A stretch of 64,000 bases of DNA from Adineta vaga. Lineage: Eukaryota; Animalia; Rotifera. The DNA is taken from positions 5,332,001 to 5,396,000 of the forward strand of contig CP075493.1 of the NCBI GenBank assembly GCA_021613535.1, read 5' to 3'. The position numbers were made by a program, and so were the translations under genes. Shown piece by piece: positions 61,392 through 64,000 of the stretch. Within the stretch, counting starts at the first letter, position 1. Every line of letters begins with the position of its first letter. The notes below the pieces were generated by a model. It was not told where the DNA came from. It saw nothing but the letters and a program-made list of their open reading frames with translations, and did not search any database.

Positions 61392-61464
61392 AGACCATTC
61401 TTGTGTCAGTCGAATCTGTACAAAAATTGTTATATCGGAATCGCGTACTACGAGTTTGCTTCAT
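61392..61464 (-). promoter_or_regulatory. Candidate RNA polymerase I core promoter/start region
   Basis: Positional inference only: a unique block between the spacer subrepeats and the 5' ETS, ~520 bp upstream of 18S, and conserved in an inverted copy at 62652-62724. Confidence 0.4.
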
Positions 61465-62226
61465 ATATAACTGAGGAATACGTCAATCCATCTGCTTATT
61501 CATTTTTTCATTCACCTACGTCGTTGTATCAACTCCACATGTAATACGAAGTTGACTCAATCGATTTGCCGAATCCATTTTCTATTCAGCTATTTTATTG
61601 TAGCAACTTCATATATAATATGAGCTCGAGTTAATCTATTTGCTTGATCATCGTCGTGTCTTCGCGTATTTCTTTTTCTTTCTTTCTACTATATATTATA
61701 TACTACGACTTGGCGACCGATTCGCTTATTCGTCTTCACACCCTTGTATATTTCTTTTCTTTCCTGTATACTGTACTATTCTATATTATATATGAAGAGT
61801 GGTCAATCGTTTTGCTTATTCGTCTTTGCATTTTTACCTATTTCTTTTCCTTTTCTTTAACCTCATATTATATATGAAATCCAGTCACTCCATTTGCTTT
61901 CTCATACTTTTGGATTCAGTTATTTCTCTTACTTACTCTCCATCTTCATACGTAAAATCAAGTGAAATCAATCCATTTGCTAATTCATTGTCTTGAAATC
62001 ATGTATTTGGTTTACGCGTTTTGCAACTTCATACTATATATGAAATCAACTACATCTATTAACTTACTCGTTTTCTTGTATTAAGCTAAAACTTTGGTTT
62101 TCTCTTCAATTTCATATCATATATAAAATCCAGTCAGTCGATTTACTTATTGATTCTTTCGTATTCAGCTACATCTTCTCTCTCTGTTATCTTCATATAT
62201 AAAATATCAAACCGGGTCAATTCATT
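61460..62226. repeat. rDNA intergenic-spacer subrepeats, about 10 degenerate units of ~80-85 bp
   Basis: Core ttcatatata...gtcaatccatttgcttattc recurs near 61460, 61545, 61607, 61690, 61782, 61863, 61945, 62027, 62111 and 62191. Confidence 0.8.
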
Positions 62227-64000
62227 TTTTTTTTTTTTTTTTTTTTGGAGACAAAGCTTTATTCAATATAATTGCAGTACAAGATCGAAGAAAAAAACAA
62301 CGGATGTACGTTATTATATGAACGCTGGAAAGAGAGAAGAAAGCGGACGCATGACTAGTGTCTTATGTCCGTAGAAGAGAGAGAAGAAGTTAGTTATAAG
62401 TTACATAGAGGAGGAAAACGTATTGGCACATGTAAATCATCAAAAAACGTGGTGTATGTTTTGTTACAATGTTCGGGAGGAGAGAGTGATACATGATGTC
62501 TTTATGAAGAAGAGAGAAAAGAAAGCTTGAATGGTGTACTCGCTTGTTGACTTCGTGTCCAGTAAATATGTGAAGAGATACAGAGCAAGTGATTCAACAT
62601 ATAATATAAAGGAGTCAGCAAGAGCATTGCTGCGTTTCTTGATATATATGAATGAAGCAAACTCGTAGTACACGATTCCGATATAACATTTTTTGTACCG
62701 ATTCGGCCAGCACAAGAATAGTCTTGAATATCGATGTATATATTATAAAGATATTCAGGAGGTGTTGTTTTAAATTTGGTCGAAGATGTGTTGGAGATGA
62801 TTTCGTAGAGTGTTATCATTATTTATGGTTGCCGTTTGAATTGCTTTTTGTAGTAATCCTGTTGCATACACGTCGATTTTGGGTACGTTGCTGATCTGGT
62901 GAATGTAATTTGTTGAAGTATATATGGGCAGACCAAGAGCCGCCCGTAGTGCTTTGTTTTGCATGATCTGCAGTCTATTCCATATATGTTGATCAGCAGT
63001 AAGCAGAACAGGATAGCCATAAATAATGATTGTGCGCACAATTGATTTGAAAATGTTTATCATTATCTTCATATTTGGATCGTAAGCTATTCTCGATAGA
63101 TAGCGAAGCAGACTAATCCGGGGACTAATCTTGCTTTCTATATGGTCGAGATGCTTTCGCCAGCTGAGCCGTTTGTCGATGATAACACCCAAGTATCTAG
63201 TGTGATCCACTGGAGTGATGATGGTGTTACCCACTTTCACTTCCACTGGATTTTTGTACTTCTTCCTTGGGCGTACGCTAAAGTGAATCAGCTCAGTCTT
63301 CGTTGGTTGCAGCTGCAGTTTCCATGAAGAGCACCAACTTTCAAACGCATCTATGGACTGTTGAAGTCTTAATTTAAGACCTGTGGTGGATATTGTCGAT
63401 GTCCATAGAGCTGTGTCGTCGGCGAAGAGTCCATGTTCAGTATGAGACGGTATACCATTCATCGAATCTGCCGTGTAGATGATGTATAACAATGGTGACA
63501 ACGGAGATCCTTGTGGTGTACCGCTCTTGAGCTGGAACGATCGTGATAAAACATTTTCTAATTCAATTGCGGCTGTTCGATTTTGCAAGAAGGAGATCAG
63601 ATATCTAACTAAGTATCGAGGAAGACGTAGATCATCGAGTTTGTAGATTAAACCATCATGCCATACTGAGTCAAAAGCAGCTTTAATATCGAAGAGAACG
63701 ACAGCCGAATGACGCCTCATACTTTTAGCTGTCAGCTGTTCTTCGGCGTATCGTTGTAATCTCACGATATTGTACACTGTACTCTTTCCTGGTCTGAAGC
63801 CGGCTTGATGTTCTGGTAAGATGTTGCGTCGATTTAGTTCAGACATTAGACGTTGTTTGACTATTTTCTCCAGTAACTTACCTAAGCAGTCAGGAGACTA
63901 ATAGGCCGGTAGCTAGACGGATGTTGCTTGTCTTTCTTCGGCTTTAGTAGAAGAATAATATTTGCTTGTTTCCATGTGTCGGGAATGTAACCATAATTCA
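62225..64000 (-). mobile_element. Non-LTR retrotransposon (jockey/I-like RT), 3' end with poly(A), inserted in the rDNA spacer
   Basis: YRPISLL, QAGFRPGKST, FDIKAAFDSVWH, GTPQGSPLSPLLY, FADD and YLGVIID motifs; stop at 62770; AATAAA at 62258-62263; A22 tail at 62225-62246; 1-bp frameshift near 63890. Confidence 0.95.

Follow-up and report, generated by a model that had tools for sequence, protein, structure and literature searches.

Why does a retrotransposon inserted in the ribosomal DNA (rDNA) spacer of the bdelloid rotifer Adineta vaga carry an inverted copy of the presumptive start region of that same rDNA? The question arises near one end of a 64,000-nucleotide stretch of A. vaga contig CP075493.1 (positions 5,332,001 to 5,396,000, forward strand), which we call the window and to which all unprefixed coordinates refer. 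There, a long interspersed nuclear element (LINE) interrupts the spacer of an rDNA unit. We lean toward the view that an ancestor of this LINE captured promoter-proximal spacer long ago and that the captured sequence has been retained for homing to that spacer. The evidence comes from the inverted pair itself, the places where the element's family has landed, the conservation of the captured sequence, and its distribution among related LINEs.

The inverted pair and the element that carries it

A repeat search returned the inverted pair 61365-61469 and 62647-62751 as 105 nt that are 79% complementary, with 1,177 nt between the arms. The preliminary description of this DNA had reported an ungapped inverted copy of 73 bp, and the core is as described: 61392-61464 and 62652-62724 agree at 65 of 73 positions (89.0%; BLAST E ~1e-20 in the equivalent copies L034 and L035). 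The weaker extension that it mentioned is also real, as 61365-61505 aligns with the 3' untranslated region (UTR) of the LINE over 145 nt (74.5%, E 3e-22). The similarity is far beyond chance. Arrays of rDNA are hard to assemble, yet an artefact is extremely unlikely given the E value, the further near-identical copies with distinct junctions and target-site duplications (TSDs), the recurrence of the shared sequence in independent assemblies and metagenomes, and the Logan contigs of other runs that cover both arms.

Alignment with an uninserted rDNA unit (L033) defined the LINE as a 4,922-bp insertion, from 62228 to the window-equivalent position 67149, flanked by a TSD of 12-13 bp (GGTCAATTCATTT). 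Because the second arm lies inside this insertion and is missing from the empty spacer, it is part of the LINE 3' UTR, and its orientation is opposite to that of the rDNA block, as the preliminary description had it. The element, a LINE of the jockey superfamily, begins with CATT and encodes an open reading frame (ORF) 1 product of 525 aa and an ORF2 product of ~980 aa with AP-endonuclease (APE) and reverse transcriptase (RT) domains. Pfam matches to Exo_endo_phos, Exo_endo_phos_2, and RVT_1 were found in ORF2 of the sister copies L035 and L038. Against a hallmark of three CCHC zinc knuckles in ORF1 of Hebe-like jockey-clade LINEs, ORF1 here has one strict CX2CX4HX4C match, and its match to PRE_C2HC is weak and below the cut-off. 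The window copy has one ORF2 frameshift near 63897, and its AATAAA signal (62258-62263) lies 11 nt ahead of the tail.

The first arm, which we call the rDNA block, sits where an RNA polymerase I (Pol I) promoter is expected, in agreement with the preliminary description. It lies between the spacer subrepeats and the 5' external transcribed spacer (ETS), occurs once per unit, and is conserved in related species. Within the analyzed assembly (100.8 Mb, six contigs), it is identical across all 29 units. An exact-pattern scan of metagenome contigs found 27 loci, ~21 of them with the block at a constant distance from the ETS and 18S and two of them LINEs, and a pattern-independent search through an ETS-encoded ORF added 14 rDNA contigs with the block at 79-89%. 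In total, ~35 bdelloid rDNA contigs have the block at the same promoter-proximal position, and A. ricciae rDNA has it as well. Conservation among rDNAs is unbroken from the ETS through the block and falls just past a TATATA motif.

The presumptive Pol I start has two candidate positions, ~61340-61355 and ~61465-61472. The conservation boundary (~61475) and the initiator-like TATATATG motif at the block border suggest the latter. This motif resembles a ribosomal initiator, a role that we propose from its sequence; it recurs in every spacer subrepeat, and rDNA conservation falls upstream of it. The public runs were used as Logan contigs, none of them on record as RNA. One high-depth contig from a probable RNA run covers 60880-61339 and stops at 61339(+14); as a matter of contig ends and not read starts, it is suggestive only of a block just upstream of stable ETS RNA. 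Depending on the start, the block would span either about -20 to -130 or about +1 to +100, in the latter case as the beginning of a leader that is removed early.

Landing sites and conservation in the element's family

We refer to the family of the window LINE as family A, with subfamilies sf1 and sf2. The four sf1 copies are 99.5-99.9% identical; three lie in spacers of the chromosome-1 array and one lies on C5 with its own TSD. In sf2 (~88%), one copy lies on C4 outside rDNA and another, L038, is inserted in rDNA, antiparallel and exactly between an rDNA block and its TATATA motif. L039 is a rearranged family-A copy in a subrepeat at the edge of a C4 array. The preliminary description had asked whether every genomic copy has the block and whether the copies insert in the spacer. 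We found the block in all seven, including the non-rDNA copies on C5 and C4, and five of the seven lie within 0.9 kb of an rDNA block.

The junctions differ among the window copy, L035, L038, and L039, giving at least four independent spacer insertions; L034 has the same 5' junction as the window copy. The landing zone amounts to ~27 kb (29-30 units × 0.9 kb) of the 100.8-Mb genome, and the chance that at least four of six to seven independent events would fall there is of the order of 1e-13. Such a strong bias fits the earlier suggestion that the block is a tether steering the element to the spacer. Spacer insertions occur in both orientations, and their TSDs flank GTTT(T)GCTT motifs, which are found at the block end and in each subrepeat box. 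The insertion junctions identify the subrepeats, each of which holds a conserved box (GTCAATC..TTTGCTTATTC), as the target zone of the LINE.

The sf2 copy in rDNA, L038 (C1:5560159-5565064), has both reading frames open; it is a naturally occurring allele in which one unit has its presumed start region divided. It detaches that unit's block from its own TATATA and subrepeats, and it brings in a same-direction copy 4.9 kb upstream.

We compared sf1 and sf2 across the element. The block is identical at 81 of 83 positions (97.6%), against 89.6% for ORF2 as a whole, 93.6%, 95.3%, and 80.0% for ORF2 codon positions 1, 2, and 3, 67% for the UTR past the block, and 78% for the terminal 150 nt. The block is thus more conserved than even the second codon positions of the RT, and it differs from third positions (Fisher test, P ~1e-5) and from the post-block UTR (P ~1e-9). 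The contrast with third positions and with the UTR indicates that the block is under purifying selection in the LINE. One role suggested for it earlier, self-silencing, is unlikely for this reason, since a self-damaging antisense promoter would not be preserved as the most conserved part of the element.

Family-A copies, both in and out of rDNA, share LINE-specific differences (CTGGCC, GTG) from the 29 identical rDNA blocks, and recent gene conversion therefore does not explain the conservation. This bears on the possibility that the captured sequence is a functionless passenger, picked up by chance and kept rDNA-like by conversion. Copies do lie 0.4-0.8 kb from an rDNA block as inverted repeats, the intergenic spacer (IGS) repeats of the Pokey transposon evolve in concert with rDNA (PMC3849761), and the block decays in lineages outside rDNA, such as the Hebe family described below. 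However, the shared differences leave no recent conversion tracts visible, and sf1 and sf2, which are 20% apart at third codon positions, are still 97.6% identical in the block. A neutral passenger is, in our judgment, quite improbable.

No conserved RNA structure was found in the block (alifold −3.2 kcal/mol, z −0.9), so the constraint acts on primary sequence. A duplex between LINE block RNA and the rRNA-sense block is predicted at −120 kcal/mol, compared with −37 ± 5 for shuffled sequences. In one 2013 run the LINE UTR is present and the ETS is missing, a sign that this UTR is transcribed.

A module shared by Hebe-like LINEs

Family-A ORF2 is 75% identical in amino acids to UniRef D1D8L9 (AP-like endonuclease/reverse transcriptase, Adineta vaga). 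A sister family with ~20 dispersed copies in the genome, family B, matches primers published for Hebe (PMC2861651). By these sequence matches, family B is Hebe, family A is a related but separate family, and the genome is that of A. vaga or something very close to it. In the ORF2 tree, family A forms a separate branch inside a Hebe-like clade, and lineages that carry the block are spread throughout this clade. The preliminary description had treated the capture as a property of the window element; it is instead ancient and common to the clade of Hebe-type LINEs, across several rotifer genera, and has a single junction in all of them. Similarly, the 73-bp core was correctly recognized, but the captured piece is really a module of 0.3-0.6 kb comprising the block, TATATA, and subrepeats.

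The order of elements is the ORF2 stop, a LINE-specific linker, the block, TATATA, box-bearing subrepeats, a hairpin, AATAAA, and poly(A). The block is constant in position, ~40 nt past the stop and followed by IGS-like subrepeats, and the terminal hairpin is kept in all Hebe-clade LINEs. The subrepeat-like part is far clearer in Hebe and Rotaria LINEs than in the window LINE. In Hebe, the UTR holds the first third of the block, nearly identical to rDNA, followed by 3-5 tandem repeats like the spacer subrepeats, and is collinear with rDNA 61355-61714 (386 nt, E 2.5e-18). The module is also present in LINEs of Rotaria sp. Silwood2, R. magnacalcarata, and A. ricciae, in three LINEs nested in a European Nucleotide Archive (ENA) metagenome contig, and in two JGI contigs; the alignments of their UTRs to rDNA spacers cover 260-600 nt at 70-81%. 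In family C of A. vaga there is at most a trace of the module, and the block is present in the related A. ricciae element L052. Family A, in which the block is intact, occupies the rDNA spacer zone, whereas Hebe, with its half-decayed block, is dispersed and subtelomeric.

Several individual loci add detail. The sf1 ORF2 stop, TAA at 62770-62772, lies 15 nt ahead of the TGA (equivalent to 62755-62757) of sf2 and L039 and is a derived, slightly earlier stop. A 673-nt contig (contig 11) of the probable RNA run X9 matches the block over only 35 nt (61382-61416), with flanks from the Hebe 3' UTR, and the Hebe UTR thus seems to be expressed as well. The nested ENA contig (L049, 17 kb; ~6340-6400 and 12720-12850) holds its three Hebe-clade LINEs head to tail through their modules: the second starts within the block of the first, and the third, which is 5'-truncated, starts just past ..GAGTTTGCTTC of the second's block, an arrangement resembling telomeric LINE arrays. 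In A. ricciae CAJNOJ010000016.1 (L050), 7 N at 9286-9292 separate a family-A LINE, cut at its position 3505, from rDNA ETS, block, and subrepeats. This locus lies in an 801-kb scaffold with ordinary genes, and the gap is probably a scaffolding join of collapsed repeats; we discarded it as a junction and used only the rDNA sequence past it.

The junction immediately after GAGTTTGCTTC was used both in an A. vaga rDNA block (by L038) and inside the LINE block of L049, and the module is therefore itself a landing site. Strict endonuclease specificity was considered and rejected, as the TSDs of dispersed Hebe and family-A copies have no single consensus; only one of the dispersed-copy TSDs resembles the box, although GTTT(T)GCTT recurs.

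The linker and the left homology boundary (window ~61375) are common to all module lineages, which argues for a single origin. An outgroup LINE from A. steineri (L055, 54% aa identity) has only the hairpin and tail, with no module. We rejected 3' transduction as the origin because the module precedes the ancestral hairpin, tail, and poly(A) signal and does not follow them. On the rDNA side, LINE homology begins at ~61375, adjoining a conserved stretch found only in rDNA (61340-61375), and the 5' ETS has no BLAST match to the LINE below 61355. Sensitive BLAST found no ORF2-like, tail-like, or hairpin-like sequence beside the rDNA module; the 5' ETS against the ORF2 3' end, and the LINE tail against the spacer past the subrepeats, likewise gave no trace of a transfer from LINE to rDNA. 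Given the module-less outgroup and the lack of LINE-like flanks on the rDNA module, these comparisons point to transfer from rDNA to LINE, a direction that we consider quite probable. The earlier claim that the element captured the rDNA promoter is thus likely right in direction, with the block as a putative promoter.

The opposite history, also raised in the preliminary description, would derive the rDNA block and subrepeats from the 3' UTR of an ancient antiparallel Hebe-like LINE that the host co-opted. The LINE and rDNA blocks form a star-like pattern that leaves the direction unpolarised, as every LINE block has a closer counterpart in rDNA than in any other LINE lineage. The 3' UTRs of this LINE clade form tandem repeats by themselves (PMC2861651), and transposon remnants have been proposed as the building material of spacers (PMC10319768). 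However, this account must contend with the outgroup and the position of the ancestral hairpin and tail downstream of the module, with the absence of any hairpin, tail, or ORF2 trace flanking the rDNA module, and with conservation that runs unbroken from the block into the ETS of a unit that always needs a start region. We regard it as improbable.

If the module were matched to its host, LINE blocks would be expected to resemble the rDNA of their own species. We examined six alignment columns at which both Adineta rDNAs differ from most other rDNAs. The Adineta state occupies 29 of 36 cells in the LINEs of A. vaga and A. ricciae (three ORF2 lineages), compared with 7 of 36 in other LINEs, and the Adineta LINEs share Adineta-specific rDNA states at 4-6 columns. 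The A. ricciae element L052 has three states otherwise seen only in A. ricciae rDNA, and for the R. magnacalcarata LINE the best match is a widespread rDNA type, at 87% against 73-79% for others; the Rotaria sp. LINE is matched by a different type. With two discordant LINEs (L054 and L051) and no recent conversion tracts, these patterns are at most suggestive of host tracking by the LINE blocks.

Table 1. Positions of rDNA and LINE features in the 64,000-nt window
Feature	Position	Strand	Basis or remark
28S rRNA gene	54607-58392	-	Part of the single rDNA unit in the window
5.8S rRNA gene	58687-58840	-	Same rDNA unit as the 28S at 54607-58392
18S rRNA gene, first rDNA unit of the chromosome-1 array	59062-60874	-	Rfam SSU_rRNA_eukarya, 1580 bits
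5' ETS	60875-61364	-	Conservation 0.9-1.0 in 14 rDNA taxa
rDNA promoter-proximal conserved block (arm 1)	61365-61469	-	One per unit; repeat search and conservation
TATATATG-type motif at block border, minus-strand reading	61463-61473	-	Read directly from the letters
~9 spacer subrepeats of ~83 bp	61480-62227		Repeat families D1-D3 from repeat search
TSD, 3'-side copy (GGTCAATTCATTT)	62215-62227		Comparison with uninserted L033; 5'-side copy past window end
LINE poly(A) tail (T run on + strand)	62228-62246	-	Read from the sequence
LINE 3' UTR	62247-62769	-	Missing from uninserted spacer
3'-terminal hairpin CGGAC..GTCCG	62344-62371	-	Alignments
Degenerate subrepeat-like part of module	62530-62646	-	Aligns to 61470-61590
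block' (arm 2), inverted copy of rDNA block	62647-62751	-	Most conserved segment of the whole LINE
ORF2 C-terminal part (RT region)	62770-64000	-	Translation; continues past window end

The next rDNA unit, beyond the window (C1:5403097-5403886), carries a 790-bp insertion relative to the uninserted unit L033.

A proposed homing function, its alternatives, and known systems

Based on these observations, we propose the following putative history. The ancestor of the Hebe clade would have taken the module from rDNA once and placed it after the ORF2 stop, ahead of the ancestral hairpin and tail, where it lies collinear with promoter-proximal spacer and antisense to rRNA transcription, and purifying selection would have kept it since. 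The LINE would thus bring along the sequence of the zone in which it lands, and the sense RNA of the LINE would be complementary to the rRNA-sense strand of that zone, either as spacer or leader RNA or as the displaced non-template DNA strand. The module also holds the same GTTTGCTT-type motifs as the insertion sites, and proteins that bind the shared motifs could provide another route. By pairing or by shared motifs, the ribonucleoprotein would be tethered near the rDNA start region, where insertions would be harmless. That the module functions in homing to the promoter-proximal spacer is a serious possibility, though we stop short of calling it probable. More tentative, and rather unlikely, is the specific version in which homing of this APE-type LINE is RNA-guided, with the antisense copy of the Pol I start region pairing with nascent RNA or the opened strand at active promoters and integration following in the adjacent subrepeats. 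Such a guide would have to match the host rDNA and would therefore co-evolve with it.

Several observations weigh against homing through the module. The spacer bias could come from retention in a safe haven instead of insertion. Hebe is mobile despite its half-decayed block, and the block is therefore not needed for retrotransposition. Family C, whose copies in A. vaga have no recognisable block, also has an insertion in a subrepeat box, so some of the bias could stem from endonuclease preference or tolerance of the spacer. In Rotaria, LINE copies whose block is intact occur outside rDNA (n = 2, in assemblies that are biased against rDNA). Finally, the blocks of A. ricciae L054 and of the Rotaria sp. 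LINE L051 do not find their best match in the expected rDNA type.

The family-C insertion in question (L046; C4:3072353, 3085334, 3102023, and 3118334) is a 5'-truncated LINE that runs antiparallel to the rDNA. Four units of a C4 array each contain it, and it was thus amplified together with the rDNA unit.

A different function for the same module would be mimicry at the DNA level, in which every integrated copy acts as a Pol I promoter or enhancer and recruits Pol I factors. Such a mimic could maintain the element within nucleolar or open chromatin, give rise to Pol I transcripts that run antisense through the LINE, or provide a promoter for a downstream rDNA unit where the LINE is inserted antiparallel, as at L038. 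There, the same-direction module now lies 4.9 kb upstream of the cut-off rDNA block. The retention of the whole start-region architecture (block, TATATA, first box, and subrepeats) is consistent with this idea, as are the conservation in LINEs of positions conserved in rDNA and the sharing of some host-specific states. However, the module is antisense to the LINE genes, and the antisense RNA made by an active mimic ought to be detrimental to the LINE, which is at odds with the purifying selection on the block. The Logan contigs gave no sign of Pol I initiation in the LINE, and mimicry alone does not explain the insertion bias. We consider a promoter mimic unlikely.

Compared with other LINEs of rDNA arrays, family A occupies a distinct niche. 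The R1, R2, and R9 elements, the last of which is present in the same genome, use one fixed 28S or 18S site and rely on co-transcription. Family A instead has several spacer and block sites, both orientations, its own CATT start, and two full copies outside rDNA, and it thus lacks a single fixed site in an rRNA gene. HeT-A and TART, the telomeric jockey-clade LINEs of Drosophila, belong to the same superfamily as family A and have a 3' UTR promoter, long regulatory 3' UTRs, and head-to-tail arrays like that of L049. The HeT-A 3' promoter is the element's own Pol II promoter in sense orientation, whereas the module of the window LINE is host start-region sequence in antisense.

Hebe itself was described as a subtelomeric non-LTR (long terminal repeat) retrotransposon of the jockey clade in A. 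vaga by Gladyshev and Arkhipova (2010; PMC2861651). Hebe and the window LINE share ORF1 and ORF2 (APE and RT), a CATT 5' end, an AATAAA signal 11 nt ahead of the poly(A), 7-13-bp TSDs, mostly full-length copies, and tandem repeats in the 3' UTR. The window LINE differs in belonging to a sister family, in its intact block, and in its niche in the rDNA spacer as opposed to the subtelomeres of Hebe. The same paper reports 72-bp tandem repeats in the 3' UTR, and term searches of it and of a 2021 survey of bdelloid transposable elements returned no passage tying such repeats to rDNA. The homology of Hebe-clade UTRs to the rDNA start region therefore appears to be new.

The closest parallels come from other kinds of elements. 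Pokey, a piggyBac DNA transposon of Daphnia, is associated with rDNA and carries rDNA spacer sequence in nearly all copies (PMC3849761); its authors proposed roles in expression or insertion specificity for the IGS repeats (PMC3849761), and it is the only case of IGS-derived sequence in a transposable element listed in a 2024 review (PMC10946416). Its repeats, derived from a non-repetitive part of the IGS plus internal transcribed spacer 2, occupy the 5' region and undergo concerted evolution with rDNA. In contrast, the window element is a LINE with a start-proximal block and subrepeats in its 3' UTR, with no recent concerted evolution, and its target is the same spacer. Cassandra, a group of terminal-repeat retrotransposons in miniature, and short interspersed nuclear elements (SINEs) derived from 5S rRNA genes likewise carry an rRNA-gene promoter and mirror mutations of the host promoter (PMC10946416; bioRxiv 10.1101/2023.07.14.548913). 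These use an internal Pol III promoter, in sense, for their own transcription, whereas the window LINE has a presumptive Pol I start region, in antisense, in the 3' UTR of an autonomous element. As in Pokey and Cassandra, rDNA spacer homology is present in essentially all copies of the window LINE's family.

Thus, rDNA regulatory sequence is already known in transposons, as 5S promoters in SINEs and Cassandra and as spacer sequence in one DNA transposon, Pokey. An autonomous LINE with start-proximal spacer of the large rDNA in its 3' UTR was not found in the literature that we searched. Here, LINEs of two or more rotifer genera have the block in common, and it is associated with insertion into the same region of which it is a copy. 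Further products of the analysis are ~35 bdelloid rDNA start regions for comparison and, in L038, a natural disruption allele. If homing is true, it would show how an endonuclease with only loose preference can still reach a safe genomic niche, and the so far undescribed bdelloid Pol I start region would become directly testable. It would also bear on how retroelements persist in the asexual bdelloids.

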